64,000 nt of DNA, taken from the IMG/VR virus record IMGVR_UViG_3300042891_000711, positions 62,001 through 126,000 of that record; one strand, given 5' to 3'. This document shows positions 23,450-52,139 of the stretch, in pieces. The position numbers and the translations under genes were made by a program. The number at the start of each line of letters is the position of its first letter. Positions within the stretch are counted from its first letter, which is position 1. The notes below the pieces were generated by a model. The model ran no database searches. It saw only the letters and a program-made list of their open reading frames with translations, and was not told the DNA's origin.

Positions 23450-25759
23450 ATGGCAATAAATTCCAATCCCGAAATTGAAGAAATCATTGCGGCTGCAACT
23501 GATCTCGCACGTGATTATAGGCACGAATATGTAACACTCGAGCATTTGTTAATTGCACTCGTTGAATTTAGATCATTTAAGAAGTTGTTAACTGATTATG
23601 GCATTGACACTACACCGCTATTAGCAGACTTATACGAATACACTGCTCAACAGGATCATCTTGTTGACTTGTCGGATAAAGAAATCGTTCCACAACGTAC
23701 ACATAGTTTAGAGCGTGTGTTTAATCGTGCATTTACACAGGTGTTGTTTACAGCACGTGAGCAAATGGAGCCAGTGGATTTATTTCTAAGCATCAGTCAA
23801 GAAACTAATAGTCATGCCGCTTACTTTATGCTTAAATGGGGTATTAACCGTAAAGATCTAGTAAAATATTATGCAGATAAATTTGTCGATGGTAAAGCAG
23901 TCAAGACTAAAGATCCAAAAGTCAAACAGGATTACTCTGATGCAATATTAGAAGAATACTGTACAAATCTAAATGCCGTTGCTACAGAAGGCAAAATTGA
24001 TCCAGTTATTGGCCGTGAATACGAATTAGAAGAAATTGCACAGGTATTAGCACGTCGTCATAAATCCAACGTGCTTATGATTGGTGATCCAGGTGTGGGT
24101 AAAACTGCTATTGCAGAAGGTCTAGCATATAAAATAGTCAACGGTGAAGTGCCAGAATACTTAAAACCCTACACAGTCTATAACTTAGAGATTGGTAGCT
24201 TACTAGCAGGTAGTAAATATCGCGGCGAGTTTGAAGAAAAACTTAAAGATGTACTTGAATCACTGAACACCAAAGGCAATTGTATCTTGTTTATCGACGA
24301 AGCACATCAAATGCAAGGTGCCGGCGCAGGTAGTTCAAGCAGTGTAGATTTTGCTAATATGCTAAAACCTGCACTGGCCAAAGGTGGTATTAAAGTTATT
24401 GCATCAACTACCTACGAAGAATACACACAGTCATTCGAAAAAGACCGTGCGCTAATGCGTCGTTTCTATAAACTAAACATTGACGAGCCTAGTCCAGAAG
24501 TTGCCAAAGATATTTTACTTGGGCTTAAAGGGCACTTTGAAAAGTTCCATAATGGTGTAATCTTAGAAGAAGCAATTGAACTAGCTGTCGACCTAAGTGT
24601 ACGTTATCAAACAGACAAACGCTTACCAGATAAAGCTATTGACCTAATCGACATGAGTTGCGCACGTCTTAAAATTAATAATCCAACTTGGGTAGTTAAT
24701 GGCGATGCAATTGTTGAAACACTAGCTAAAGCAACTAAGATTCCTAAAGAGAATTTTGACAGCAAACATGCATCAACATCATTACCAAGTTTAGAAAGCA
24801 ACATTAAAGATAAACTATACGGACAAGATACCGCAGTTGATGCAGTACTTGAAAAGATTTATGTTGCTAAGGCCGGATTGAAAGCACATAACAAACCAGT
24901 AGGTAACTTTTTATTCTTAGGCCCAACTGGTACAGGTAAGACAGAGTTAGCTAAATTGCTTAGTGAAAACTTAGGTATGAAGTTAATCCGCTTTGATATG
25001 AGTGAATACCAAGAGAAGCATGCTATGGCTAAACTTATCGGCGCTCCCCCGGGCTATGTTGGCTATGAAGATGGTAACTTAGGTGGCGGCTTGCTAATTA
25101 GCGAAGTTGAGCGTAACCCACATTCAATTATCTTACTAGATGAAATTGAAAAGGCTCACCCGGACATCAGTAACTTGTTACTACAGATTATGGACGAAGG
25201 TACTATTACTGGTAGTAACGGTAAGAAAGCGGATTGCCGCAATGCTATGCTAGTATTAACTAGTAACTTAGGTTCAGCAGACAACGAGCAAAACAACATT
25301 GGCTTTGGGCGTGACTTACAAAAATCAGGCGAAGATGATAGTGCTGTTAAAAAGTTCTTCAAACCAGAGTTCCGCAATCGTTTAGATGCAGTTGTTAAAT
25401 TCAACGGACTTGATAAGATTAGCATGAAGAAGATTGTTGTTAAATTCTTAAACGAGCTTAACGAATTGCTTGCAGAGAAACAAATTAAACTACGTTCAAC
25501 AGAAGCACTAGTTGACCACTTAGTTGAAGTTGGATTCGATCGAGCAATGGGCGCACGTCCACTATCACGTAAGATCAGCGAGTTAATCAAAGTGCCGTTG
25601 AGTAAGAAAATCTTGTTTGATAACATTGCCAGTGGCAGTAGTATTACCGCAGACTATGTCAACGATGCTGTAGATTTTATAGTAGTTGATCCAATCGATG
25701 ATATGATTCTATTAGAAAATAAAACAGTTGATGACGAAGGTTTTATTATAGTAGAATAA
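23450..25759 (+). CDS. clpA: ClpA-like AAA+ unfoldase
   Basis: Clp N-domain, GDPGVGKT and [26 protein letters not shown] loop. Confidence 0.93.
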
Positions 25760-38355: not shown

Positions 38356-38941
38356 TCTAGATCTGGATCGACTTAAACGCGATGCCAGACGTATTAATAA
38401 TAAAATTATCAAAGCCTATAGTAACTTAGCGGTGCCTGATAATAAGTACTATCAAAACGAGCTAGCTAAACAGTTAGAAGGTGTGCCTATGAGTAGTAAA
38501 TATCATGACTACTATAATGCATTGACCTTTCCTTATCAAGAAATACATCAACTATACCGAGAAGCCTGTACATTCTTTAAGGAAGTTAATCAATATGATC
38601 AACCTTACTGTGTACATGCTTGGTTAAACTATTTAGAAAAAGGCGACAGTATTCCATGGCATAATCATTGGGGTGCCTTAAGTGGCTTGCACGAAACTTA
38701 TGTTTGTAGTTATTACATTAATGCAGAATCTAGCACCACTATATACAAATTCCCCAACGAAACCTACAATGTAGCTTGCAAAAACAACACTATTAACATG
38801 TACGAAGATGTAGGTGATGTTCACATGGTAGAGCCGTGGCAAGGTAATGAGCCGCGCATTAGTATTAGTATGGACTTTGTACCGTTAAAATACGTACATG
38901 CTACACCGTTTGTCTTAAATACTTGGATGCCGGTTGTATAA
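38324..38941 (+). CDS. 2OG-Fe(II) oxygenase-like protein
   Basis: AWLNY...WHNH...SYYI...HMV...RISISMD. Confidence 0.7.
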   Translation: MTNPIQTKTINLDLDRLKRDARRINNKIIKAYSNLAVPDNKYYQNELAKQLEGVPMSSKYHDYYNALTFPYQEIHQLYREACTFFKEVNQYDQPYCVHAWLNYLEKGDSIPWHNHWGALSGLHETYVCSYYINAESSTTIYKFPNETYNVACKNNTINMYEDVGDVHMVEPWQGNEPRISISMDFVPLKYVHATPFVLNTWMPVV

Positions 38942-38974
38942 ATAAACATAGTATATAATTAAGGAAGATTTTCA

Positions 38975-39688
38975 ATGAAAAAACTAGTATTATTAGTAGG
39001 TCTATTATTAAGCGTAAATGCTTATGCAGGCATCAATCAAGAGTGCCCTACACTAACAGCCGCAGGTGCAGCTACATACGCTGCCAAACCAGGCGATCAA
39101 GAAATTTGTCATAAGAACTACGCTGTTATCCATAGCTGTGCAGTTAAAGCACCTATTGCAGTATTTGAACGGTTGTCATTAGAAGACATGACAGGTCCTG
39201 CAAAACGTAAAGACGACTTCCGACCAGATCCAAAAGTTACTCCGGCATGTTCAGCTACCCTAGCTGACTATGCTACTGTAGGTCGTACACATGACCGTGG
39301 ACATATGAGCCCGGCTGGTAACAACACACAAGATCCAGCAATCATGAGTGAAAGTTTCTTCCTAAGCAATATGGAGCCACAAATTGCTAATAACAATCGT
39401 GGTATATGGAAACAGTTAGAAACATACGAACGTGAATGGGCTAAACAACCAGGTACAGATTATTACATTATTAGTGGTGGTATCTTTGATGCAGGCCATC
39501 AAAAAACAGGCAACGGCTTAGGTATTCCTACACGTTTATACAAGATTATTATTGAAAAGAATAGTAAGAAAGTTAAGGCTTACTTGATGCCAAACACAGC
39601 ATTACCTGTAGCAGACTTACCCAAATATGAAACTACAATAGCTAATGTAGAATCAGCAACTGGTCTTAAGTTTGCCCTACCTAAATAA
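38975..39688 (+). CDS. DNA/RNA non-specific endonuclease (NucA/EndA family) with signal peptide
   Basis: DRGHMSPA, SFFLSNMEPQ, NRGIWKQLE; MKKLVLL...NAYA signal. Confidence 0.92.
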   Translation: MKKLVLLVGLLLSVNAYAGINQECPTLTAAGAATYAAKPGDQEICHKNYAVIHSCAVKAPIAVFERLSLEDMTGPAKRKDDFRPDPKVTPACSATLADYATVGRTHDRGHMSPAGNNTQDPAIMSESFFLSNMEPQIANNNRGIWKQLETYEREWAKQPGTDYYIISGGIFDAGHQKTGNGLGIPTRLYKIIIEKNSKKVKAYLMPNTALPVADLPKYETTIANVESATGLKFALPK

Positions 39689-39690
39689 TA

Positions 39691-40455
39691 TTATTTTGCA
39701 GCTAATTTAAAAAATACTCTAACAAAATAATATTGAGGATTTATATACCTAACCCACGTGGGGCCTTTAAATATATGGCTCCACGTGGTATATTTTTCTC
39801 TGAAATCTTGATGATGTTCGTAATGCCACGCTTGATTTAAATTAAGTGGAAACAACCACGGATATGTTTTTTCTCCGTAGTGCAGAAGATAATAATCGTG
39901 TTGTACTTCTAATATAACTTTAAACAATATAGGTAATACGATTATATAGAAGTAATAATCAATACCAAATAATAATATAAAAATAATAGATAGTATCAGC
40001 TCTAGTTCTCGTAGATATTTAATTATAAATGGAAATTCTGTATATTGTTGTAATAAGATATTCATATTATCTATAGATGGCTTGCTAAATGGATTTAATC
40101 CAATCCAAAAATAGAAAATACCTTTATGCAATGTTGTTGTAAATATATCTTTGTCTGTTTTCCAATACAAATGATGATACCAGTGTGTTTTGATAGATGA
40201 CGATTTATCTGCATAAGTGTCCGGACTGACAATATAGATAAAACAATCAATTATATACCTAAAAAAAGTATTTTTTGGAAGTATATATCGATGTTCCACA
40301 TAATCATGGCCTATGATTTCCGCAAACATCCATACTATGTACGTAACAAGTAATGAGATTGTTAATAAATGCCAATTATTAAAATATAATAACCCGCTAA
40401 CGGCTATTATAATATAAGCATGCTGTTTAATAAATTCTATTAGAGTTTGTTTCAT
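39691..40455 (-). CDS. divergent desaturase-like membrane protein 3
   Basis: HDYVEH, HWYHH, HYEHH plus TM helices. Confidence 0.72.
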   Translation of the reverse strand: MKQTLIEFIKQHAYIIIAVSGLLYFNNWHLLTISLLVTYIVWMFAEIIGHDYVEHRYILPKNTFFRYIIDCFIYIVSPDTYADKSSSIKTHWYHHLYWKTDKDIFTTTLHKGIFYFWIGLNPFSKPSIDNMNILLQQYTEFPFIIKYLRELELILSIIFILLFGIDYYFYIIVLPILFKVILEVQHDYYLLHYGEKTYPWLFPLNLNQAWHYEHHQDFREKYTTWSHIFKGPTWVRYINPQYYFVRVFFKLAAK

Positions 40456-41233
40456 TTTTGGTAAATGCTATTAAAAATATCCAATACTGTAAGTTGATAT
40501 ATTTCCACCATTTACTGCCAAAATATAATTTATTTGGATTTTTATGATGACTAACGTGATATGCTGTATTAAACCAAATTGGTAACATCCATGGTAAATC
40601 TTTACAAGGTCGTTTACTTGTATGAAAAAAGATATCAGGGCCTGCACAATATACTATTACTATATATGTAAGAGGTAATACATAAAAAGATATGTAATTA
40701 GCAACGCCGAATAACAATATGTATACCACACTACATATTGTTAGTATCGTAAATCGATAGTTAACCAACCAATCAGGATAGTACCAAGTTGGCTGATACC
40801 TCGACACATCAATATCTAACATCATTGATGGTGTTGTTTTTTTATCAATCATGGTAAATGTATTACAAAAAAACATAAAGGTATTTTCATTGACTGCCGC
40901 TGTAACTGGATCTTGATTGATAAACCAAAATTTATGATGTATTATATGGCCGACAATATAACCTTTTTGATTTTTGGCCGATACAAATGGGGAATATATA
41001 TACGCTATCACTAAAAATAAATATCGTGTCAGTGAATGTTTAAATGTAATTATATTGTGTTGAGCATACTCATGAACAAATAATGTCAACATTGCGCATA
41101 TAACATATGAAAATATAAATCCCGATACCAGATTAACATAACCTAAATATGTCATTATGCTTAAAAATATAAGCAATAAAAGATAATAATAATCAACAAT
41201 TTTTATTTTAATAAAATTTAATAAGTTTAACAT
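40427..41233 (-). CDS. divergent desaturase-like membrane protein 4
   Basis: HEYAQH, HIIHH, HVSHH; start reassigned to ATG 41233 (MLNLLNF). Confidence 0.72.
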   Translation of the reverse strand: MLNLLNFIKIKIVDYYYLLLLIFLSIMTYLGYVNLVSGFIFSYVICAMLTLFVHEYAQHNIITFKHSLTRYLFLVIAYIYSPFVSAKNQKGYIVGHIIHHKFWFINQDPVTAAVNENTFMFFCNTFTMIDKKTTPSMMLDIDVSRYQPTWYYPDWLVNYRFTILTICSVVYILLFGVANYISFYVLPLTYIVIVYCAGPDIFFHTSKRPCKDLPWMLPIWFNTAYHVSHHKNPNKLYFGSKWWKYINLQYWIFLIAFTKNETNSNRIY

Positions 41234-41238
41234 AGTAA

Positions 41239-41250
41239 TATTTATAAATA
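41239..41250. promoter_or_regulatory. bidirectional late-promoter palindrome
   Basis: TATTTATAAATA gives TATAAATA on both strands between divergent genes. Confidence 0.75.
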
Positions 41251-41279
41251 CTAATTGTAAACAAAAATAAAGGTCCGGT

Positions 41280-42017
41280 ATGAAAATAACTGAAGGTGGG
41301 AATGTATTTAAACTAGCTGATGGTAGCGAAGCAACCGGACGTATCAATCGTGCAGATGTCATTCCTACAGTTAAATGGTTAGAGCAATTAACAGGACTTA
41401 ATCTAGTAGACAATATGCTAGGGTCAACTGGCTACAAAGAAACAAGTGGCGACCTAGACCTAGCAGTTGATGTAAGTAAAATCAGCAAAGATGTACTGGT
41501 ACAACAACTATTAAAGAAAGGCATTGAACCTACTGACATTAAAAAGACAGGCGACAGCGTACATTTTAAAACACCCATCAACGGTGAAGCAAAGAACGGC
41601 TACGTACAAACTGACTTTATGTTTGGTGATCCAAACTTCCAACGTTTTAGTATGACAGGTAGTCCAGAAGGTAGCCCATTCAAAGGCATGCATCGTCATG
41701 TATTACTTGCTAGTATTGCTAAAGCACAGGGCATGAAATGGTCATACAAGAATGGCCTAATGGACCGTACTACAAACGAAGTTATTTCAAAAGATCCAAG
41801 TGAAATTGCACACAAACTATTCAATGGTAGTGCCGCTGATCTAGCATCAGTTGAAACTATCGTTGCTAAGATTAAAAATCTACCTAACTACAATGCCTTA
41901 GTAGCAGATGCACGTGAAACATTAGGCAAGGAAAATGTACAACTACCGGAATCACAGCAGGCAATAGTAGGCGAAGGTTCGGCAGCATGGTTTAAGAACT
42001 GGAAGTCAGTGCTGTGA
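41280..42017 (+). CDS. Pol-beta superfamily nucleotidyltransferase with leader
   Basis: MKITE leader; LGSTG...SGDLDLAVD...VQTDFM. Confidence 0.8.
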   Translation: MKITEGGNVFKLADGSEATGRINRADVIPTVKWLEQLTGLNLVDNMLGSTGYKETSGDLDLAVDVSKISKDVLVQQLLKKGIEPTDIKKTGDSVHFKTPINGEAKNGYVQTDFMFGDPNFQRFSMTGSPEGSPFKGMHRHVLLASIAKAQGMKWSYKNGLMDRTTNEVISKDPSEIAHKLFNGSAADLASVETIVAKIKNLPNYNALVADARETLGKENVQLPESQQAIVGEGSAAWFKNWKSVL

Positions 42018-42955
42018 GAGCTAAGGAGTTTATCTTAGAAGGCGGTTGGGCAAGTACTTTAACACAAGGTACACATATCACACCTGCACTAGTTGATGTT
42101 GTTGTACAATCATTACCTGCATTTGAACAAGCATTAAATGCTTTCTTAAAAACCAAAGACCTAGCACCAGTTAAGATAGGCACGCCAGTTGGTAGTACAA
42201 CATACTACAAACGCGACCTTGCACAAAATCCTCAACGTGAATACGGTGACATTGATGTTAACTTCTTTGTGCCACGCTTGTCTGATATGTCGGACAATGC
42301 TAACGAACAAACATACAGTTCAGCTATTAAAGAGTTTTGCGACAGTAACCCTAACTACTCAACTAACAACGGCACAAATGTTATAATTAAAGTAGGCGAC
42401 GAATATGTACAAGTTGACTTTGTTACAGCATACTATGAGAACGAACAGTGGAGTCGTGCCTTAGGACCAGAGTACAATGTTAAAGGTGTACTAAGCGCAA
42501 GTTTATACTCATCACTAGCAGAAGCATTAAATCTCAGCTTTGGTGGACGTGGAGTACAGGTTAAATTACAAAATGGTGTGCCAGTTAGTTTTAGACAAAC
42601 TAAAGATACAGAGCTTAAAACCATAACAAATAATCCCGACACATGGGCAGTTGATATTGCTACATTCCTTGGTGCTAAAACTATCAGCGCACGTTTAGCC
42701 AAGTATCCAGGTATGGGTGACGAAATAAAAACTTCAAATACTATTAACAGTATTGTTGGCATTGCTGAAAGTTTAGGCCGTCCTGAGTTAATAGAACAAG
42801 TGAAAGCAATTTACATAAGTAAAATAAGCAAGGCAGTTAATAGCAGTAAGTTTGATAAAGCTGTGACATCAGAAGCTAAGAAAAAAGCTGAAGATACCAA
42901 AGCATTATTAACAAGAGAAGCACAGCGTATATTAGGACAGTTTGATGCGATTTAA
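42014..42955 (+). CDS. Pol-beta superfamily nucleotidyltransferase with leader
   Basis: MRAKEFILE leader; VGSTTY...YGDIDV...VQVDFV. Confidence 0.78.
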   Translation: MRAKEFILEGGWASTLTQGTHITPALVDVVVQSLPAFEQALNAFLKTKDLAPVKIGTPVGSTTYYKRDLAQNPQREYGDIDVNFFVPRLSDMSDNANEQTYSSAIKEFCDSNPNYSTNNGTNVIIKVGDEYVQVDFVTAYYENEQWSRALGPEYNVKGVLSASLYSSLAEALNLSFGGRGVQVKLQNGVPVSFRQTKDTELKTITNNPDTWAVDIATFLGAKTISARLAKYPGMGDEIKTSNTINSIVGIAESLGRPELIEQVKAIYISKISKAVNSSKFDKAVTSEAKKKAEDTKALLTREAQRILGQFDAI

Positions 42956-44297
42956 AGAATTTTTAAGAGAATACAGCAGAGAGAAAACAGTCAATGTCTT
43001 TGGCAACAAACTTGTTGCGGCATTAGGCAAGGATAAGAGCCACACTCTTTCTGGTACACAGTTAGGCACGGATCGTGCGTTCATTGATCAAAAGATCAAA
43101 GTTAATGATATGATTACAGCAGAACAACGTCAAATAATTATCGATCACATCATGGTTGTAATTGAAAATTCTGACCCTACAGCAAACAAAGAGTATGTAC
43201 AGTGGTTGACTAAAGTATATGCTAACCAAGGTATTAAACTAGAAGATATAATAAGTCGTGGTAACAGTGCGCTTAAAATGTATCACGAATTCAAAGTTAA
43301 AAAAATATTACCAGCAGAATATAGAGACATTGGTCGCATTGACTTTGCTGGCTTAGAAGCAATAGCACAAAATCTTGACCTACGTAATGCCTTAGCCGCT
43401 AAAGAAGAACAAGAAGCCGCTAAGACTGTAGACAAGGGCGAAGCTGAAACTGTATTTGAAAATGCTGCAGTGCGTATCATTGTACCCAAGAATGAAGCAG
43501 CATCCGGTTACTATGGACAAGGTACACGTTGGTGTACTGCTGGACGTGACAACAATATGTACGATCGTTATGCTCGTGATGGTGACTTGTATATCTTACT
43601 ACCTAAGAAACCCGACTACGAAGGTGAGAAATATCAACTACACTTTAGTAGCAATCAGTTTATGGACGAAGGTGATAACTACGTAGACAGCGTAAAAGAC
43701 CTAATAACTAAACGCTTTGGCAATTTATTACCATTCTTTATGGAGCGCGAGCCTTCACTTAAAGATTGGTTAGTGTTTACTCCAGATGAGGTATTAAAAC
43801 CATTATTGGCTAAAATTAAAACAGCCGTAAACGACCACGTAAGCGAAATAGTCAACGACTGGGAAGTACAAGACGACTACTGGTGGGATCACCTACGCAG
43901 TGAAGGATATGTATATCCAGAAGGTCACGACGAAGAAGGCGAGATTGACTTTGATGCTGCGGCAGATGCCGATCTAAGTTACACTGATTGGAACTACGAA
44001 GCCAGCGACTTTATTCGAACAATTAATAATGCTGTAGATCTAACGCCAGAAGAAGTGCGCGAAATTGCCCAAGAGGAAGAAGATGATTACAACGGAGATG
44101 TGGGTGTTAATGACCTTGATACTATCATAGAACGCAGTATATCAAAAAATATTGGTAGAAATAGTAGTGACGGTGGTGTGATAGAATGGATTAAAGATCA
44201 CATTTATATTAAGAAAACTGGTGGTGATGGAGCATGGGACGTTAGTTTGCTGTACACAGACAAAGAAGGAAAGCGTGCAGAATACGCAATACACTAA
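42945..44297 (+). CDS. PcfJ-like domain protein with leader
   Basis: MRFKEFLRE leader; YGQGTRWCTA...KYQLHF. Confidence 0.65.
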   Translation: MRFKEFLREYSREKTVNVFGNKLVAALGKDKSHTLSGTQLGTDRAFIDQKIKVNDMITAEQRQIIIDHIMVVIENSDPTANKEYVQWLTKVYANQGIKLEDIISRGNSALKMYHEFKVKKILPAEYRDIGRIDFAGLEAIAQNLDLRNALAAKEEQEAAKTVDKGEAETVFENAAVRIIVPKNEAASGYYGQGTRWCTAGRDNNMYDRYARDGDLYILLPKKPDYEGEKYQLHFSSNQFMDEGDNYVDSVKDLITKRFGNLLPFFMEREPSLKDWLVFTPDEVLKPLLAKIKTAVNDHVSEIVNDWEVQDDYWWDHLRSEGYVYPEGHDEEGEIDFDAAADADLSYTDWNYEASDFIRTINNAVDLTPEEVREIAQEEEDDYNGDVGVNDLDTIIERSISKNIGRNSSDGGVIEWIKDHIYIKKTGGDGAWDVSLLYTDKEGKRAEYAIH

Positions 44298-44298
44298 T

Positions 44299-45000
44299 AT
44301 GAGAGCTAGAGACTTTACAAAGAACAACGTTGCTTATAACAAACAACTAAATCCAGTGGCCTGGGACAATAATCAATTAAACGATGAAGTGCGAGATCGA
44401 CTACTAGAGATTGCTGAACGTTTTGTCAGCTACTTAGAGATTCCTAATTTTAAAGTAGAAGATGTTGTACTCACAGGTAGTATGGCCAACTACAACTGGA
44501 CTAAGTTTAGTGATTTTGATGTGCATGTTGTTACTAACTACAGTGACCTACAATGTGATGATATTGCCGAAGCGTTCTATCGTGCCAAGAAACAAATTTG
44601 GAATGACGGGCACGATATTACTATCTACGGTTATGATGTAGAATTGTATGTAGAAGATGTTGCGCAACCTCCAGTTAGCGAAGGTGTATATAGTTTGTTA
44701 AACAATAAGTGGCTTAAAACTCCCGACTTTAAAGTGCCATCAATCGATCGTGCTAGTGTTAATGCCAAAGTATTAGATCTACGTAGCCAAATTGATCATG
44801 CTATTGTAGCCGCTGATGATCCAGAAGATATTAAACGTATATCAGAAAAGATTCGTAAAATGCGCCGTGCAGGATTAGATGCTGGCGGCGAATTCAGCAC
44901 AGAAAATCTAGCATTTAAAATCCTACGTAATATGAAGTACATGGATAAATTAAGTAAAGCATATCGTCAACAACAAGACGATGATTTGAGTTTAAAATAA
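44299..45000 (+). CDS. Pol-beta superfamily nucleotidyltransferase with leader
   Basis: MRARDF leader; LTGSMANYNWTKFSDFDVH...DVELYVED; start reassigned to 44299. Confidence 0.82.
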   Translation: MRARDFTKNNVAYNKQLNPVAWDNNQLNDEVRDRLLEIAERFVSYLEIPNFKVEDVVLTGSMANYNWTKFSDFDVHVVTNYSDLQCDDIAEAFYRAKKQIWNDGHDITIYGYDVELYVEDVAQPPVSEGVYSLLNNKWLKTPDFKVPSIDRASVNAKVLDLRSQIDHAIVAADDPEDIKRISEKIRKMRRAGLDAGGEFSTENLAFKILRNMKYMDKLSKAYRQQQDDDLSLK

Positions 45001-46004
45001 TGAGAGCACGTGAATTTATAACTGAAGCTATTAGCAACAAGCGAGTAATTCAGTATATTAAACAACATCACCCTAGAGGCGAATGGACTGCGGTTGCTAA
45101 TAACATGGTTATGAAATACCCAAAATACGAATTATCGTGGGTTCCTGTTAGCCAACTTAAAATAGATGGTGACGAGCCAATTGAAGATCCGTATAGTCGT
45201 GTTATTGACGTAGATCAAAGTTATGCAAGCAGACTTTCTACACAAGATATTGAAGATAATCCTATTGTCATAGACGCACAAGGACATATCTTAGATGGTA
45301 ATCATCGTGCTTGGCAAGCAAAACAATTAGGCATGGATATGATACCAGCGTATGTGCCTGTTAAAGAATTAACTGAATCACTAGATCTTGAAGTTGAAGA
45401 ATTTTTAAATAATCTAACACCGGAAGATGTTGGTGTAGACGAAGTAGGCGATTACCGTGTACACTTTGAAGGCTTTACTGATGACTGCCAATCCAGCAGA
45501 GATTACTGTCGTAATCCAAAAAAAGTGTTTCAAGAAGTATTTGCTGATTTTATCCGCCGTGAGGGTGGACAACAACCTGTAGCGTCAGGTATGGTAGGTG
45601 ATGATGACTACCCTATTCTATACAGCGTGTTTAAGGACACAGTTAGAAAAAATGTGCCGTTAACTCCAGAAAAAGCATACCAAATAGCATATAATAAAAA
45701 GAAACCGTGGCCTACAGGCAGTGCTGAAGAGCAACTAATTCGTAGTGATTTCCAATTAAGTGATTTGTATGATAGGTATGTGTTGAATCAGACCGATATG
45801 AGAGCAAATGAATTTATAAGCGAAGACGAAGGATTAAGCTATCAAGGTAATTGTACCGATGATGATGTTATTGAATATATTTTCGGTGATGCCACTACGT
45901 TTGCGCAGTTGGTTGACGAATACGGCGATGAGTTTGTATTAGACGATTTAGTAGTAAAGTATAATCCAGAAGAAGATATACACTACTTCTATTATAAGAG
46001 CTAA
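45000..46004 (+). CDS. ParB/Srx-like domain fusion protein with leader
   Basis: MRAREFITE leader; PIVIDAQGHILDGNHR; second in-frame leader MRANEFISE at 45798. Confidence 0.75.
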   Translation: MRAREFITEAISNKRVIQYIKQHHPRGEWTAVANNMVMKYPKYELSWVPVSQLKIDGDEPIEDPYSRVIDVDQSYASRLSTQDIEDNPIVIDAQGHILDGNHRAWQAKQLGMDMIPAYVPVKELTESLDLEVEEFLNNLTPEDVGVDEVGDYRVHFEGFTDDCQSSRDYCRNPKKVFQEVFADFIRREGGQQPVASGMVGDDDYPILYSVFKDTVRKNVPLTPEKAYQIAYNKKKPWPTGSAEEQLIRSDFQLSDLYDRYVLNQTDMRANEFISEDEGLSYQGNCTDDDVIEYIFGDATTFAQLVDEYGDEFVLDDLVVKYNPEEDIHYFYYKS

Positions 46005-46005
46005 T

Positions 46006-46314
46006 ATGAGAGCCAATGAATTCTTAACCGAGTCGTACGAGTTTTTTGATACTATAGTAGATCAAATCAAAGCTCAAGTGCCAGCAGAAGAAATATGGTT
46101 TCACGGTAGCAGGGTAATTGGAACTGAACACGATGAAAGTGACTGGGATATCTTAGTTATTGTTCCTGATAACATAGTAGGTGATGAGTATATCAATGTT
46201 ACTAGGATATTACAATCTATAGCAAGAAGATACGAAAATTTTGATATACAACCTGCTCGTGCGTCAAACAATATTGCCCGTATAGCAAGAGAAGAAGGCG
46301 AACGAATAGATTAA
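46006..46314 (+). CDS. minimal nucleotidyltransferase (MNT-like) with leader
   Basis: MRANEFLTE leader; IWFHGSRVIG...SDWDILV. Confidence 0.85.
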   Translation: MRANEFLTESYEFFDTIVDQIKAQVPAEEIWFHGSRVIGTEHDESDWDILVIVPDNIVGDEYINVTRILQSIARRYENFDIQPARASNNIARIAREEGERID

Positions 46315-46316
46315 AG

Positions 46317-46395
46317 AACACCTACCTTAGGCCCATACTCGTTATGGTGTTTGGTGTGGCCGGCTGCTGGCCTGGAGGGATGCCAAAAGTGAGCA
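46317..46395 (+). ncRNA. candidate structured RNA (family not identified)
   Basis: GC-rich intergenic island with stems ACACC/GGTGT, CCATA/TATGG, GGCCGG/CTGGCC. Confidence 0.5.
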
Positions 46396-46422
46396 AGATT
46401 AAACAAGCGATAAATACTTAAT

Positions 46423-49400
46423 ATGCGATATAGTCAAATTAAACAAGCCTTAAAAGAAGCAGAGATCATTGATGAAGTATCAATGAGTCCTTCCAGCCTA
46501 GAAGCGTTCGCTAACAGTCCGGAAGCTGATGGTATGCTTATGGGTATTGAATTTGAAATGTGCGTACCCAATGCCAGCTCAGGTGACTATGAGCCTGAGT
46601 GGGAATACGATTACGAATACAACGAAAGCGCCTACAATATTGATGATATTCTTAACTTCTTCCGCAACGGTGATTTCAGTAACATGAGTCGTAGTGACTC
46701 TGAGCGTTATCGTAGTGAACTATATGACGAATACCTAGACTGGACTAATGAAGCATCTAATCGCTATATAGACGATAACGTAGATGAATTAGACAGCCTT
46801 ATCCGAGATCAACTTGAAGGCGAAATTGATCGTGATGATGTCAAAGATGCGGCACGTACTCGCTGGATAGAAGCAAACCCTGACGAAGATCCCGACAGTG
46901 ACGATGCTGATGCAGAAATTCGTGTCATAACATTAGAAATGATCGAAGATCGAGTAGATGAATTAATGGCAGATACCAGCGGTAGAGAGTATCAATATGC
47001 CTACGACCAAGCACGTCAAGAAATGGAAGATGACTTCCGTAACGGTGGTGATGGCGATGAAGGTGCTTGGTTAAGCGACATTGGCATTGGTGATATGCAG
47101 GACGCTGAACGTCATTGGGGCTTTGATTGGCCTCACATGTATGACGCTAACGAAGGCAATGATGGTGGTGATGCAGACATAGATCAAGTAGCAGATGACT
47201 TTTATGGTGCTACTGGATATGAAGCACGCGGGTTTAGTAATTACCACAGTGGCAATCGTAGTCAGCAACAACAAGAAGGTTACTTTATTATTGAACCCGA
47301 TGCTTCAATTGATGCTGAACAAGGTGATGCAGGCTTAGAGTTTATCAGTCCAGCTATGCCACTTAAAGATGGCTTGACTATGTTGAAAAAAGTTAAACAA
47401 TGGGCTAAGTTGGCAGGTTGTTATACTAACAAATCAACGGGCCTACACATGAACATCAGTGTGCCTAACATGACCACTGATAATCTAGACTATGTTAAAC
47501 TAGCATTATTCCTAGGTGACGAATACGTACTTCAAGAGTTTGGTCGTCAGTACAATACCTATGCTAAAAGTGCCATGAAGATTGTTAAAGAAAAGATTCA
47601 GGCCAATCCAGAAAACGCCACAGAATTGTTGGCCAAGATGAAAGAACATCTTGGAGCGGCAGCTAGTAAACTAGTACACAGTGGCGTTACACAAAAGTAT
47701 ACAAGTATCAATACCAAAGGCAACTACGTAGAATTCCGTGGTCCAGGTGGTGATTATCTAAACGAAGACATACCTAAACTTGTTAATACTGCTCTACGCC
47801 TAGCACAAAGCCTACGTATTGCCACAGACGAGTCAGCATACAAACAAGAATACGCTAAGAAATTATACAAACTAATCAGCCCAGAAGGCGAGTGGACTGA
47901 TCCTAATAACTCAGTAGCATTGTTCAGTCGCTATGCTCTAGGACAGATCAACAAATCAGAATTAGTAAGTAATGTTCGTCAAGCACAAACAGCTCGTAAA
48001 GAGAAGAAAGGCGAAGAAGTACAGTACTGGGTAATGAATAAAGATGGCACTGGTGGTAAGCAAATGGTATTTGCCGCTAGTGAAACAGCCGCTATCATCC
48101 TAGGCGGTAAACAAATGGGCATGAACCGTGAACAAAGTATCAGCAAACTTAAAGCTGAATTGTTTGTAGATACTAACAAAGAAAATACACCGCCAGCATC
48201 AGTACCACTTAGTTGGATTGATTGGATAACAGATACACTACCTACGGTTACTGTAGATACAGCAAATTCTGTAAGAGAAAGAATAAAAGATGGCAGAGAT
48301 AATTTAGATGCAGATGCCAATGGTTGGATAGTTAGACAGATTGACAACGAACTACGCAGTAGAATGGATCAAGGAGTAGTCGACGGCAATGAAACACGCT
48401 GGAAGGTTTATTTTGCTCGTGGTAGACATGTAGATCAAGACCCGGTATTCGTCGATGCTGATAGTCCTCGTCAGGCTAAACTTAAAGCCGCAGATATATT
48501 CATGCGAGAGCAACGGATATCAGTGGGCCTACACGATTTAGAAGCCATTGCTACCACACAAGATGCTGGCCGTCCAGAAGTAACTTGGAATATTATAAAC
48601 GGTCTAGGTGAACCTGCTGGTACTGTTAACGCAAGAACCAGTGACGAAGCACTACATGTATACGGTAGTGTTAATAATGTCGATACTAGATACTATAGAG
48701 CAACACCAGTTGAAACAACGCCAAGTGCAGGCACGTACACTAGTTTCGCAGATGCGCAGGCTGCGGCAGATAGAGCAAACGCTGGTAATACCACTAACAG
48801 AGAAGTGTTTGACGGTTTAGCCAATAACTGGCAAGAGTGGCTTCAGGGTGTTGGTAGACATACCGACGGTAATCTACAGCGTATACTTGATAATATGGCC
48901 CAGGGTGTTAATGCTCACTATACCAACTTAACTCTTGACGAGAAAGACTTTATTATTAATACTGTTAATCAAGAAATACGCCGCCGTAGTAGTAATAACG
49001 AATTAGCTGCCAACGCAGGTGGTGCCGAAAACGCAGTGCGTGATAGTTTGCCCCAAGCACATCGTGAGTGGTTAGACAATGTAGCCGATAAGAGTGACAT
49101 GGATCTAATCAACGTATTCCGTAATGTCAGCACAACCGCAGTATTAAATGATCAACAGACTGCTTACTTTAGAGTTATTATTAAACGTGAACTACGTCGT
49201 CGTGGTATCAGCGACAGTGAGCGCGATGCTAGCGAACAAGGCGCAACTCCAGTACCTAATTATGAGATATATGCGCCAGACAGCGGAGTAGTAGTACACC
49301 AATTCCACGCCGACAACGAAACAGACGCAAATAGAAAGTTCAGTGAATTTGAACAGAATTACGAATCAGATTACGATTTCCATCACGAGTATCGCAGAAT

Positions 49401-49650
49401 TGGCCCTGCACAACAGGAATTACCATTGGAACCCGCAGTGCCACAGACCACTGCTACAGATTTTGAAGTAGTTAAAGCTGATGGTAGTGTGGTGTCAAAC
49501 ATACGAGGTGCTGATATGGTCTATGCTCATCGTAAAGCACGTGAATTAGAACAAGACCTGGGCTTAGAAAGTGGTGCGTTAACAGTTAGAGCATTACCAA
49601 CAACAAACGAATCTATAAAACAATTACGCCGATTGGCAGGATTAGTATAA
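46423..49650 (+). CDS. putative amidoligase (COOH-NH2 ligase) multidomain protein
   Basis: GIEFEM, IEPDASI, GLEFISP, TNKSTGLHMNIS, KYTSIN, VEFRGPGG; leader ending LKE; C-terminal LRRLAGLV. Confidence 0.82.
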   Translation: MRYSQIKQALKEAEIIDEVSMSPSSLEAFANSPEADGMLMGIEFEMCVPNASSGDYEPEWEYDYEYNESAYNIDDILNFFRNGDFSNMSRSDSERYRSELYDEYLDWTNEASNRYIDDNVDELDSLIRDQLEGEIDRDDVKDAARTRWIEANPDEDPDSDDADAEIRVITLEMIEDRVDELMADTSGREYQYAYDQARQEMEDDFRNGGDGDEGAWLSDIGIGDMQDAERHWGFDWPHMYDANEGNDGGDADIDQVADDFYGATGYEARGFSNYHSGNRSQQQQEGYFIIEPDASIDAEQGDAGLEFISPAMPLKDGLTMLKKVKQWAKLAGCYTNKSTGLHMNISVPNMTTDNLDYVKLALFLGDEYVLQEFGRQYNTYAKSAMKIVKEKIQANPENATELLAKMKEHLGAAASKLVHSGVTQKYTSINTKGNYVEFRGPGGDYLNEDIPKLVNTALRLAQSLRIATDESAYKQEYAKKLYKLISPEGEWTDPNNSVALFSRYALGQINKSELVSNVRQAQTARKEKKGEEVQYWVMNKDGTGGKQMVFAASETAAIILGGKQMGMNREQSISKLKAELFVDTNKENTPPASVPLSWIDWITDTLPTVTVDTANSVRERIKDGRDNLDADANGWIVRQIDNELRSRMDQGVVDGNETRWKVYFARGRHVDQDPVFVDADSPRQAKLKAADIFMREQRISVGLHDLEAIATTQDAGRPEVTWNIINGLGEPAGTVNARTSDEALHVYGSVNNVDTRYYRATPVETTPSAGTYTSFADAQAAADRANAGNTTNREVFDGLANNWQEWLQGVGRHTDGNLQRILDNMAQGVNAHYTNLTLDEKDFIINTVNQEIRRRSSNNELAANAGGAENAVRDSLPQAHREWLDNVADKSDMDLINVFRNVSTTAVLNDQQTAYFRVIIKRELRRRGISDSERDASEQGATPVPNYEIYAPDSGVVVHQFHADNETDANRKFSEFEQNYESDYDFHHEYRRIGPAQQELPLEPAVPQTTATDFEVVKADGSVVSNIRGADMVYAHRKARELEQDLGLESGALTVRALPTTNESIKQLRRLAGLV

Positions 49651-50315
49651 TGAACTTATTTGAAATGTTTGAACAAGGGCCACCTAAGCCAACGCTGATA
49701 GATGCATTGCGTGATTTTTTGCCCATCGCAGTTCAACATTTAAAATTAGATCACATTCCTAAAATTCGTTTAGTTAAATCATTAGATGATACAACATTTG
49801 GTCGTTATGTCAATGATGAGCAAGTAATTTATGTAGTTGTTGATAATCGCAATCCTGTAGATATCTTGCGTACACTAGCACACGAAATGGTACATTATGC
49901 GCAGGGTCAAGATGATCAACTTGATAGCACTTCCGGCGAAACAGGCAGTCCAATTGAGAACGAAGCCAACGCAGAAGCAGGTGTTATTATGCGGTTGTTT
50001 AATCAAAAACATCCTAGCTATATGCAGGCCGATCCAATAGCATTACCTGAAGCATGGAGTGCAAAATACAAAAAGAGTATTAATTGCAGTAACCCAAAAG
50101 GATTCAGTCAAAAGGCGCACTGTGCCGGACGTAAGAAAACTGATGAGAACTTTGCAGATGGTAAGAAGCCAGGCCGTAAAGGACTAGCCAAACGTTCAGG
50201 TGTTGACTGTGGTCAAAGCATAAGTAAATTAAGAAGCGTTGCAAAAAATAGCAGTGGCGAAAAGCAACGTATGGCACACTGGTGCGCTAATATGAAATCA
50301 GGGAGAAGTAAATGA
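49650..50315 (+). CDS. zincin-like (HEXXH) protein plus basic Cys-pair modules
   Basis: MNLFEMFE leader; LRTLAHEMVH...ENEAN. Confidence 0.72.
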   Translation: MNLFEMFEQGPPKPTLIDALRDFLPIAVQHLKLDHIPKIRLVKSLDDTTFGRYVNDEQVIYVVVDNRNPVDILRTLAHEMVHYAQGQDDQLDSTSGETGSPIENEANAEAGVIMRLFNQKHPSYMQADPIALPEAWSAKYKKSINCSNPKGFSQKAHCAGRKKTDENFADGKKPGRKGLAKRSGVDCGQSISKLRSVAKNSSGEKQRMAHWCANMKSGRSK

Positions 50316-50989
50316 AGTCAAATGAATTTTTATCAGAATCTGAAAAGCAAAAAGGTGTTGACGGTAAAGCCTGCTGGGATGGTTATAAGCGCATGGGCAC
50401 TAAGAAGAAAGGTGGCAAGACTGTTGACAACTGTGTTAAGATGGAAGAATCCATTGATGAGTACGATGACGAAGCCGGCATGGTTGACAGTAATTTAGAA
50501 ACAATTAAACGTGCTGCTGAAGAATTAGATCAAGTGTTAGGCCAAGATGACAACATGGCTGAATGGGCACAGGAAAAACTAGCAGTAGTTAAGAGCATGT
50601 TAGTTGCTGTTAAAGACTATGTAGTTAGTCAAAAATCTACAGGCATCGATCCACAAATAGACGAAGAACTAGAAGAAACATACCACGGTGATGAGTTCTT
50701 CGAAGCCTACGGCGAAATGTGGTTTAACGAAGATGAACAATTAGACGAAGCTGAATATCACGGACGTAAAGTTCCCCTAGGTAAACCAATGCAGGGTGAT
50801 GTTAAGAAGTTTAAAGTATATGTTAAAGATCCTAGCACAGGTAACATCAAAAAAGTAAACTTTGGTGATCCTAATATGCGTATTAAGAAGTCAAACCCTG
50901 CGAGACGTAAATCATTTAGAGCACGTCACAACTGTGCAAACCCGGGTCCACGCACTAAAGCACGTTACTGGTCATGCCGCAAGTGGTAA
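50312..50989 (+). CDS. modular basic internal head-like protein
   Basis: MKSNEFLSE leader; ACWDGYK...DNCVK; RKSFRARHNC...YWSCRKW. Confidence 0.72.
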   Translation: MKSNEFLSESEKQKGVDGKACWDGYKRMGTKKKGGKTVDNCVKMEESIDEYDDEAGMVDSNLETIKRAAEELDQVLGQDDNMAEWAQEKLAVVKSMLVAVKDYVVSQKSTGIDPQIDEELEETYHGDEFFEAYGEMWFNEDEQLDEAEYHGRKVPLGKPMQGDVKKFKVYVKDPSTGNIKKVNFGDPNMRIKKSNPARRKSFRARHNCANPGPRTKARYWSCRKW

Positions 50990-50990
50990 T

Positions 50991-51410
50991 ATGACCAACT
51001 GGGAAACTTACGTTAAAGAATCCTATGAGCTTATTAAAGAAGCTGAAACTGCACTATCAATCACATTAGAACACAATGTTGAAGCATACGTTGTACACTT
51101 GTTCGCACACTTCCTAGACAAACCCAATGTCAATACAGAACCTGTGGGCATTAAACTAATGGCCAGTACCAATCTACCCGTAGCACAACGTAAGATATTA
51201 CTCAAAGATGTAGGCGATGAATGCTTGTTAATCAATGCTATGGAATGGAACCGACGTCGTTGGCCTACTGATACCTACTATGCTGAAATGGGGCAATCTG
51301 CTTATGTTACACGTGCTGTTGTGGCTAGGCCTGTAGAAGATATCTACGACGATTTGGCTATGGAATTTACTACAGTTACACAGGTTCTACGTAGATGTAG
51401 AATTAGTTAA
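50991..51410 (+). CDS. hypothetical protein
   Basis: ATG 50991 (MTNWETY); EAYVVHL...LKDVGDECLL...MGQSAY. Confidence 0.7.
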   Translation: MTNWETYVKESYELIKEAETALSITLEHNVEAYVVHLFAHFLDKPNVNTEPVGIKLMASTNLPVAQRKILLKDVGDECLLINAMEWNRRRWPTDTYYAEMGQSAYVTRAVVARPVEDIYDDLAMEFTTVTQVLRRCRIS

Positions 51411-52139
51411 TTTCATTAATTTCATTGCTATTAACACCCTGCAATACAACCAACTAGTATCAATTTCCCACCAATACCGATTGAAGTACGGAGTAGTTGT
51501 ATCATTATGATGATGCGCATGCAATACTTCACCGCCGCCGAATATACCCGGAAAAAATATTTTTGATTTATCCTTGCCACTATTGCCTGCATAGGTAAAC
51601 CCAATTTTATGATAGCCATAGTTTGATAATATTACAGCACAGGGATTAAAGACATAAAGAAAAAATGCGCCTATTACTGCACCAGGCACGCCAAATAATA
51701 TAGTCAGCACAGCCCACAATATAATTGTTCCCAATCTTGGATATTTACTATATAGATTAAGTTCAATCCAATCAATGGCAGTTATGATATCTGGTGCATA
51801 TAATTTCATTTCCTCGTCGCTGATATAATAAGGACGGCCTAGTTCATTGTGTTTATAGTCAAGCATCTGCGTAAATGTTAATTGATAAGGACTATGTGGG
51901 TCTAGCTCAGTATCACTATACTTGTGATGTTTTCTGTGTTGGGCGGCATAGTGTTGCATCCAATTGGGCCAAGAATACTGCATGGTAATCCATACCCAAA
52001 ATCTAAAAAAATGTTCTAGTCCAGGTGCAAAGCTAAAATAATGATGGCCTTTACCTCGATGTATGTAGATGGAAAATACCACAAATGTTACATGCATTAT
52101 TATTAAAAATGTAATTATAGCTGCGGTTAACCCAAACAT
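51387..52139 (-). CDS. membrane fatty acid desaturase-like protein 5 (delta-9-like)
   Basis: HRGKGH, HRKHH, DPHSP, GEVLHAHHH, WWEID. Confidence 0.9.
   Translation of the reverse strand: MFGLTAAIITFLIIMHVTFVVFSIYIHRGKGHHYFSFAPGLEHFFRFWVWITMQYSWPNWMQHYAAQHRKHHKYSDTELDPHSPYQLTFTQMLDYKHNELGRPYYISDEEMKLYAPDIITAIDWIELNLYSKYPRLGTIILWAVLTILFGVPGAVIGAFFLYVFNPCAVILSNYGYHKIGFTYAGNSGKDKSKIFFPGIFGGGEVLHAHHHNDTTTPYFNRYWWEIDTSWLYCRVLIAMKLMKLTNSTST

Follow-up and report, generated by a model that had tools for sequence, protein, structure and literature searches.

The analysed window, a stretch of 64,000 nucleotides, corresponds to bases 62001-126000 of the 218.9 kb IMG/VR viral contig IMGVR_UViG_3300042891_000711, which was judged 62% complete. 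It contains a block of about 10 kb of same-strand genes (41243-51410), uninterrupted until the next minus-strand gene, that encodes four nucleotidyltransferases together with unrelated proteins, several of which share a nine-residue N-terminal leader. Genes are designated here by their start positions in the window. The array is best explained as a hyperplastic locus of capsid-internal, injected enzymes, equivalent to the internal-protein loci of phage T4; a probability of roughly 60% can be assigned to this explanation.

In the proposed scheme, the TATAAATA site at 41243 would drive late transcription of the array, and the nine-residue N-terminal address would dock most of its products into the prohead core, by analogy with the T4 capsid targeting sequence (CTS). 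A gp21-type protease would cut after L/I-x-E, freeing the mature enzymes within the head, and these would be ejected along with the DNA and act ahead of any phage gene expression. The cargo would include two miniature polymerases resembling Pol X of African swine fever virus (ASFV), engaged in end or break repair with a ligase-like partner. Further cargo could comprise the nucleotidyltransferases 44299 (of uncertain packaging) and 46006, a ParB-like module, a giant amidoligase, and an HExxH peptidase.

A gene for a gp21-type prohead protease (Pfam Peptidase_S77, 71 bits) is cut off by the end of the contig, and the same domain is found in three near-complete relatives of 318-333 kb (83-96 bits), one of them with terminal repeats. 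The window also encodes a T4-type family-B DNA polymerase (phrog_262, 1.6e-190) and, according to profile searches, tail-fibre-like proteins. The size of the relatives, the T4-type polymerase, and the gp21-type protease together identify the source as a jumbo phage of the T4 superfamily, roughly 330 kb in size. By polymerase identity, the nearest cultured phages are Sinorhizobium phage Phosso (50.7%), Agrobacterium phage Atu_ph07 (45.6%), and the PBECO4/Asteriusvirus group (43%). The array region gave zero megablast matches to cultured phages, and a Pfam search for Gp23 was uninformative, as it returned no match in the contig nor in the controls.

N-terminal leaders, putative late promoter and scaffold-like tail

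The leader motif M-[RK]-x-x-E-F-[IL]-x-E occurs at six starts in the array: MRAKEFILE (42014), MRFKEFLRE (42945), MRAREFITE (45000), MRANEFISE (45798, an internal start within the 45000 open reading frame, ORF), MRANEFLTE (46006), and MKSNEFLSE (50312). Outside the array, no occurrence was found across the 219 kb contig. Positions 7-9 of the leader read ILE, LRE, ITE, LTE, LSE, and ISE, and its codons vary synonymously. The CTS of T4 is MKTYQEFIAE (PMC8442874). Its residues 4 and 7 steer targeting and residues 8 and 10 steer processing by gp21, which cleaves after L/I-x-E; the CTS is regarded as a general device of T4-like phages for loading diverse proteins (PMC9026906; PMC3012670). The array leader shares the E-F-[IL]-x-E core with the CTS, has an aromatic residue at the targeting position, and is one residue shorter; by inspection, the CTS itself fits the regular expression used in the search for leader ORFs.

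Recurrence of the leader extends to related phages. A degenerate DNA pattern of the leader yielded 5, 11, 12, and 13 matches in four related genomes (2, 0, 0, and 0 for the reversed control). In the vicinity of 42014 homologues (66 loci/viral contigs), 127 leader ORFs belong to about 40 unrelated families, and uninterrupted tandems reach 11 leader genes in locus L013 and seven each in L067 and L016. The Pfam domains borne by leader-tagged proteins are NUDIX, MazG-like PRA-PH, GNAT, amidoligase, DUF6267, DUF6934, and Polbeta. A complete relative (G002) carries tandem leader genes with the starts MRINELLNE, MRITEIITE, and MRINEIINE (G002:C1:174724-175903, minus strand) about 3.4 kb from its gp21 protease gene; part of the leader-tagged set of this phage thus lies in the head module itself.

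The N-termini of the two polymerase-like proteins of the array (41280 and 42014) are the disordered part of their AlphaFold2 (AF2) models. Homologues of 41280 have N-terminal extensions of variable length or none, ending in [ILV]-x-E directly before a conserved GG, which is the pattern expected of a removed pro-peptide; the homologues from cultured phages begin straight at MGG.

The octamer TATAAATA, which we take to be the T4 late-promoter consensus, is located at 41243..41250 on the plus strand, 37 nt ahead of the ATG of 41280. This gene is the first on the plus strand after two minus-strand genes, and the octamer is the first plus-strand signal after the switch. Within the window the octamer is depleted (3 observed, 10.8 +/- 2.7 expected). 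Across the contig, where it is strongly depleted as well, it has 13 copies, 11 of which are placed 13-44 nt upstream of the start codon (ATG) of ORFs with 60 aa or more; some of these ORFs immediately precede the gp21 match and are taken as head genes by position only. In this clade of phages, the octamer could help to delineate the late regulon. A scan of the array for sigma-70 promoters and terminators gave counts not above those of shuffled sequences.

A second signal may be carried by the Amidoligase_2 protein (46423..49650, plus strand, 1075 aa; Pfam PF12224, 29 bits), whose C-terminus reads ...IKQLRRLAGLV (window 49615-49647). In this genome, a [RK][LIM]AG[LIVM] tail terminates this ORF alone; it is found also in its orthologues and in the ORF following gp21 in three complete relatives. 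There, a coiled-coil protein in the position of the gp22 scaffold, directly after gp21, ends in ...[IM]KRLAGL(K) (L070 3166-3192, L071, and L072). The tail of the amidoligase may therefore constitute a second, C-terminal head-targeting signal.

Four nucleotidyltransferases of three kinds

The first-pass annotation of this DNA, made from the sequence alone, had pointed to four divergent nucleotidyltransferases of the Pol-beta fold with GS...DxD motifs within 5 kb, and to the lack of a recognizable HEPN partner. Both observations hold. The motif residues are G48-S49 ... D58-L-D60 in 41280, G60-S61 ... D79-I-D81 in 42014, G60-S61 ... D72-F-D74 in 44299, and G34-S35 ... D46-W-D48 in 46006, so that all four ORFs have an hG[GS] turn and, behind it, a [DE]h[DE]h strand, a feature of the Pol-beta superfamily. 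The third acid is D112 in 41280 and D135 in 42014, both located in predicted strands of the core sheet in the AF2 models (E108-116 and E130-140, respectively); in 44299 and 46006 it was read by eye only. With 44299 and 46006 passing Pfam thresholds and with invariant columns and fold matches for 41280 and 42014, all four ORFs are confirmed as Pol-beta-superfamily nucleotidyltransferases, of three different kinds. Beyond these nucleotidyltransferases, the 219 kb contig has no match to PF01909. The earlier description of the proteins as MNT-sized applies to 46006 (102 aa) and fails for 41280, 42014, and 44299 (245, 313, and 233 aa).

Predicted miniature family-X-like polymerases

The protein 41280 (41280..42017, plus strand) starts with a short MKITE, followed by the invariant GG, whereas 42014 (42014..42955, plus strand, GTG start) has the leader MRAKEFILE, followed by the invariant GGW. 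Neither has a match in Pfam, PHROGs, NCBIfam, or PADLOC, and searches of PDB sequences, family profiles included, returned noise only. Both nevertheless belong to sizeable families, with at least 2466 homologues in at least 1029 clusters at 50% identity for 41280 and at least 221 homologues for 42014; a tblastn search of cultured phages with 42014 found no homologue. The columns without any variation in the 41280 family (55 diverse homologues) are G7, G48, D58, D60, Q110, and D112 alone. Those of the 42014 family are G60, S61, D79, D81, Q133, and D135 (47 homologues), and the leader and the GGWA that follows it are conserved in the same aligned sequences.

Structure prediction and fold comparison, which the first-pass annotation had proposed as a check, gave confident models for both proteins (41280: pLDDT 93.5, pTM 0.84, residues 1-4 disordered; 42014: pLDDT 91.0, pTM 0.86, residues 1-11 disordered), in which the invariant acids are located on the expected helix-turn-strand and on the adjoining strand. 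In Foldseek searches of the PDB, family-X DNA polymerases (lambda, beta, TdT, and bacterial PolX) were top-ranked for both models with probability 1.00; for 41280, the match to Pol lambda/beta/TdT had an E-value of 1e-4. VIA-align superposed 166 residues of 41280 on Pol mu/beta/lambda with Z 9.8, its residues 9-192 corresponding to residues 142-335 of Pol beta (palm and thumb), and 42014 on ASFV Pol X with Z 9.7 over 168-170 of about 175 residues. Sequence identity to family-X polymerases is only 8-18%, and the likeness is a structural one, without a profile match. In a library of viral structures, the nearest neighbours are uncharacterised phage proteins, including that of Atu_ph07, followed by family-X polymerases of giant viruses.

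Both proteins begin about 10-20 residues ahead of the palm and lack the 8-kDa lyase and fingers domains. By the models, this absence counts against a Pol X of the cellular type, not against a minimal one such as that of ASFV, and 41280 and 42014 are accordingly described as predicted miniature family-X-like polymerases composed of palm and thumb only. ASFV Pol X (174 aa), also a palm-plus-thumb enzyme without 8-kDa and fingers domains, is spanned nearly completely by 42014, shares the GS/DxD/D triad, and, like the phage proteins, has a genomic association with a ligase-type enzyme. The phage proteins differ from it in their low identity, extra C-terminal helical regions, conserved N-terminal [IL]-x-E-G-G, and apparent association with virions. 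A profile-profile comparison of 41280 and 42014 gave a weak match (E 0.0019 at a probability of 14%) that covered only the YVQxDF strand; the common fold and the E-G-G start suggest that the two may be paralogs.

Other members of the superfamily fit the models less well. For 42014, matches to cGAS/CdnC (TM 0.22-0.28, root-mean-square deviation 10-17 A) were well below those to Pol beta, and an array scan with PADLOC found no match to a CD-NTase; the CD-NTase reading was rejected. The same applies to a reading of 42014 as a CCA-adding enzyme, as fold matches to such enzymes, and likewise to poly(A) polymerase, were much worse than those to family X.

Judging by the predicted folds, 41280 and 42014 most likely extend or fill 3' ends of nucleic acids. 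The leading guess for their role is break or end repair by a polymerase together with a ligase, which is plausible because of their frequent fusion or adjacency to the ligase-like DUF6267. In homologues of 41280, fusion of this domain to DUF6267 is very common; it also occurs joined to Tad3 (a Thoeris inhibitor family), NT5C/HAD-like phosphatases, amidoligase, and the cytidylyltransferase-like CTP_transf_like. When DUF6267 and neighbour proteins from Phosso and Atu_ph07 are aligned (P0242:240-601, P0255:440-770, L003 4806-6041, L074 4043-5017, and L027 5088-6236, the last with a leader), they have invariant K-x-D-G, E-G-x-V, and K columns. These resemble motifs I, IV, and V of ligases or capping enzymes and would make DUF6267 a putative ligase. 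Searches of PDB, NCBIfam, and the literature gave no support for this identity, Atlas returned DUF6267 clusters only, and no DUF6267 gene is present in this 62%-complete contig.

The nucleotidyltransferases 44299 and 46006

The 44299 protein (44299..45000, plus strand) is an NTP_transf_2 nucleotidyltransferase (PF01909, 22.6 bits, cut-off 21; phrog_36119, 2.5e-51), for which sequence and profile searches of the PDB gave noise only. It begins with a degenerate leader, MRARDFTKNN, without an L/I-x-E site. In Atlas, it falls into virus-only NTP_transf_2 clusters, and elsewhere the domain is fused to Peptidase_M23, Zeta_toxin, NUDIX, PAP2, and cytidylyltransferase-like domains.

The 46006 protein (46006..46314, plus strand) is an MntA-like minimal nucleotidyltransferase with the leader MRANEFLTE, encoded by a variable cassette. 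It exceeds the Pfam thresholds of Polbeta (31 bits, cut-off 26.9) and NTP_transf_2, matches PDC-S09 in PADLOC, and scores 28.5 bits against the NCBIfam model MntA_antitoxin NF047752, whose curated cut-off is 60. Its best PDB sequence matches are MntA (5yep, E 0.2) and 2rff (E 0.26), with other minimal nucleotidyltransferases up to E 1. The size, the GS...DxD core, and these weak but consistent matches resemble MntA of the HEPN-MNT (type VII) systems. In contrast to MntA, 46006 has no HEPN partner, scores below the cut-off, carries a leader similar to a capsid-targeting sequence, and is encoded by an exchangeable cassette of a late phage operon. Pfam and PADLOC scans of the array found no HEPN gene, the neighbours being a ParB-like fusion protein and the amidoligase, and a HEPN-MNT toxin-antitoxin pair was rejected for this reason. 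Of the four enzymes, the earlier idea of an AMPylating antitoxin suits only 46006; by family resemblance, it may plausibly nucleotidylate a protein of the host, for instance a HEPN toxin.

Cultured relatives and virion proteome

The only homologues of 41280 in cultured phages are gp65 of Atu_ph07 (31% identity by tblastn; structural TM 0.75) and XYS97604 of Phosso; the identity of the two to 41280 is 31-38%. In Atu_ph07, the order of the locus is primase/helicase, ligase-like gene, gp65, and four paralogues starting with M-[RK]-W-x-Q-L-[IT]-E. Mass spectrometry of Atu_ph07 virions detected gp65 (32.16 kDa) with 10 unique peptides and 36.8% coverage, and gp60-64 with 4-13 peptides each (PMC6102473, Table S5); gene numbers were assigned to the proteome table by exact match of computed molecular weights. 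This evidence is supportive, not conclusive. The two cultured phages thus resemble the present one in possessing a 41280 homologue, virion-associated in the case of gp65, and an array of paralogues with leader-like starts behind it. They differ in that the homologue starts at MGG without a pre-sequence, is located beside a primase/helicase and a separate ligase-like gene, and is not accompanied by a 42014 homologue.

The tandem paralogues gp63-gp60 of Atu_ph07 (L074 6588-9965; starts M-[RK]-W/L-x-Q-L-[ILT]-E), all virion-associated by mass spectrometry, show by eye YRG ... S-x-F motifs that recall those of R-S-E ADP-ribosyltransferases, T4 Alt among them.

Alternative explanations

Several points weigh against the interpretation of the array as a locus of injected enzymes. 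The L/I-x-E site is a short motif. The 41280 protein has the five-residue MKITE only, not a full leader, and 44299 is without a cut site, its homologues having variable, leaderless N-termini; these two are the weakest candidates for leader-dependent packaging, yet the 41280 family has proteomic support. The ligase nature of DUF6267 follows from motifs alone, and the ligase-like gp66 of Atu_ph07 is not on the virion list (PMC6102473, Table S5). Moreover, the Atu_ph07 virions were purified with polyethylene glycol, and the list of 131 proteins holds likely contaminants (RecA-like protein, single-stranded DNA-binding protein, and ribonucleotide reductase), mostly with 1-3 peptides (PMC6102473). 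The 41280 homologue of Atu_ph07 and Phosso adjoins a primase/helicase and a ligase-like gene, a setting that also fits a role in replication or repair. Finally, the data show the assignments to folds and families, the recurrence of the leader, the protease gene, the placement of the promoter, the turnover of cassettes, and the presence of one homologue in Atu_ph07 virions; targeting, cleavage, and injection in this phage, as well as all substrates, are what we infer. The first-pass annotation had placed the action of the enzymes right after injection. The CTS-like leaders, the gp21-type protease, the late promoter, and the virion-associated homologue of 41280 agree with this timing; delivery itself belongs to the inferred part.

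The alternative that survives best, itself unlikely, is that the array encodes ordinary cytoplasmic enzymes of replication, repair, and nucleotide metabolism that are not packaged. The PolX-like enzymes would fill gaps and a ligase would seal them, as in base-excision repair of ASFV, while the shared N-terminus would be a motif of translation initiation or recombination. The gene order in Atu_ph07 and Phosso, where the homologue lies beside the primase/helicase and overlaps the ligase-like gene, favors this explanation, as does the DNA polymerase gene of the window about 11 kb downstream. The 41280 family, with about 70% identity across hundreds of sequences, resembles a core enzyme more than an arms-race gene, and cassette exchange falls at the leader junctions. 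However, the leader is conserved as a peptide while its codons vary synonymously, it matches the T4 CTS including the cleavage site, and it heads dozens of unrelated proteins. The promoter ahead of the array is of the late, not the early, type; gp65 and its neighbours were found in Atu_ph07 virions, and the amidoligase bears the C-terminal tail of the scaffold.

Lower still in probability are the roles that the first-pass annotation had proposed for the nucleotidyltransferases: repair of tRNA 3' ends or of anticodon-loop cuts, AMPylation of defence proteins, or production of decoy cyclic-nucleotide signals. The MntA-like character of 46006 speaks for AMPylation, but its score is below the curated MntA cut-off and the locus contains neither a HEPN partner nor a target. 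The PolX-like domain is repeatedly fused to ligase-like and HAD/NT5C phosphatase-like domains, a combination reminiscent of RNA end healing and sealing, and also to Tad3. The fold of 41280 and 42014 points to the extension of nucleic-acid 3' ends, be they of DNA or of RNA, and matches to CCA-adding enzymes are far weaker than those to family X. Decoy signals are the least supported of these roles, given the poor matches to cGAS/CdnC beside clear ones to family-X polymerases.

It is very improbable that the GS...DxD motifs of 41280 and 42014 are fortuitous and the proteins non-catalytic structural components of the head, as might be argued from the absence of Pfam, PHROG, NCBIfam, and PDB sequence matches and from TM-scores below 0.5 to family-X polymerases, because the motif residues coincide exactly with the columns that do not vary in diverse homologues, occupy the expected helix-turn-strand and neighbouring strand in confident models, and accompany VIA Z-scores of 9.7-9.8 with essentially all of ASFV Pol X covered.

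Other genes of the array and cassette turnover

The remaining genes of the array, all on the plus strand, encode proteins of diverse families. The leader-tagged protein 42945 (42945..44297, 450 aa, MRFKEFLRE...) has PHROG matches only to families of unknown function; a weak PcfJ-like lead comes from an Atlas feature match to PcfJ-containing clusters (score 0.90). Three leader modules are fused in the 45000 protein (45000..46004, 334 aa): one that is ParB-like (residues 1-123; phrog_620, 1.4e-6), a middle one (residues 124-266) after an ELTE-S junction, and one of 68 aa after MRANEFISE. Its junctions keep ...ELTE before S and MRANEFISE before D. A shorter version of 160 aa in the relative L010 lacks both the ParB-like module and residues 214-266. 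The amidoligase gene is followed by that of an HExxH protein (49650..50315, 221 aa; phrog_87 metallo-protease, 2.9e-4; AHEMVH in the translation), a lead for a zincin-like metallopeptidase. The final leader gene, 50312 (50312..50989), encodes a 225-aa protein (MKSNEFLSE...) with no Pfam match.

The HExxH protein starts with MNLFEMFEQ, and MNLLEMFND opens a protein of 74 aa encoded immediately before gp21 in the relative G001 (L070 242-466); this may be another N-terminal motif of head modules.

When relatives sharing about 85-96% nucleotide identity across the array region were compared, turnover of entire cassettes became evident. The MNT gene (46006-46314) is precisely missing from L005, and in L009 and L011 no counterpart of window positions 45000-46400 is seen. 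Close to 46400, L005, L008, and L010 carry insertions of other leader genes, while L009 and L011 have two extra leader genes between the homologues of 41280 and 42014 and one more past 42014. The genes 41280, 42014, and 44299 form part of the backbone of the array, and 46006 is a swappable cassette.

The array is flanked on both sides by genes of multi-pass membrane proteins (39691-40455, 40427-41413, and 51387-52139, all on the minus strand) with histidine boxes (HxxxH and HxxHH), read by eye as fatty-acid desaturase/hydroxylase-like. The close relatives L005 and L010 lack the stretch 39689-41263. A DNA/RNA non-specific endonuclease (Endonuclease_NS, 1.5e-35) is encoded at 38937-39688; with an N-terminal signal peptide by eye and its own TATAAATA 38 nt upstream, it looks like a late, exported nuclease. 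Farther away, a ClpA/ClpB-like double-AAA+ protein of 769 aa is encoded at window 23450-25759 (phrog_4871 'ATP-dependent protease', 1.8e-240); phage-encoded Clp proteins are also discussed in the Atu_ph07 genome paper.

Relation to known systems

The closest parallel to the array is provided by the internal proteins of T4 (IPI, IPII, IPIII, and Alt). The two share an address of about ten residues (M-K/R-...-E-F-I/L-x-E) on unrelated bodies, a gp21-type protease, late genes, a hyperplastic and strain-variable locus, and a presumed counter-defence role after injection. The array leader differs in being one residue shorter and in having R-A at positions 2-3. The arrays, known from sequence, are also far larger (up to 11 genes, about 40 families), and their cargo consists mostly of enzymes (PolX-, MNT-, ParB-, and MazG-like proteins, amidoligase, NUDIX, and GNAT) rather than small basic inhibitors.

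The polyvalent proteins of phages and conjugative elements carry early-acting domains that are delivered with the DNA (Iyer et al. 2017, PMC5512222). Their repertoire overlaps with that of the array in Pol-beta nucleotidyltransferases, ParB-like domains, zincin peptidases, and GNATs. Multidomain proteins of 600-1300 aa likewise contain homologues of 41280 and 44299 as domains, and 45000 is a three-module fusion; the fusion partners of the 41280 domain (Tad3, NT5C/HAD, amidoligase, and cytidylyltransferase-like) also fit early-acting polyvalent proteins (PMC5512222). Unlike in polyvalent proteins, the modules of the array are mostly separate genes, each tagged, and fusion junctions keep the [IL]-x-E sites. 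The nucleotidyltransferases of polyvalent proteins are minimal MNT/NTox45-like ones from firmicute elements (PMC5512222), not PolX-like.

Implications

The CTS/internal-protein principle is classical in T-even phages. What appears to be new is its use, in CTS-like form, by an uncultured clade of jumbo phages for enzymes encoded in large arrays, the mimicry of a scaffold tail on an amidoligase, and the existence of two big families of ASFV-Pol-X-like miniature polymerases, whose structural neighbours in viral databases are all unnamed. A wider proposition is more tentative and falls a little short of an even chance: that a large and globally abundant uncultured clade of T4-superfamily phages of 320-490 kb loads dozens of interchangeable enzymes into its heads through the leader and the scaffold-tail mimic of the amidoligase, and that the two mini-PolX families are injected and mend or modify ends before phage expression.

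Two large families undetected by Pfam, PHROGs, and NCBIfam become defined, and the cultured relatives Atu_ph07 and Phosso, together with the packaging tools based on the T4 CTS, make the idea testable. If true, this would be the first case, to our knowledge, of family-X-type polymerases carried in a phage head. If the leader is a true capsid address, a catalogue of candidate anti-defence proteins (PolX-like, MNT-like, NUDIX, MazG-like, GNAT, amidoligase, and ParB-like) could be compiled from sequence alone, and the whole injected arsenal of such phages would be readable directly from metagenomes.

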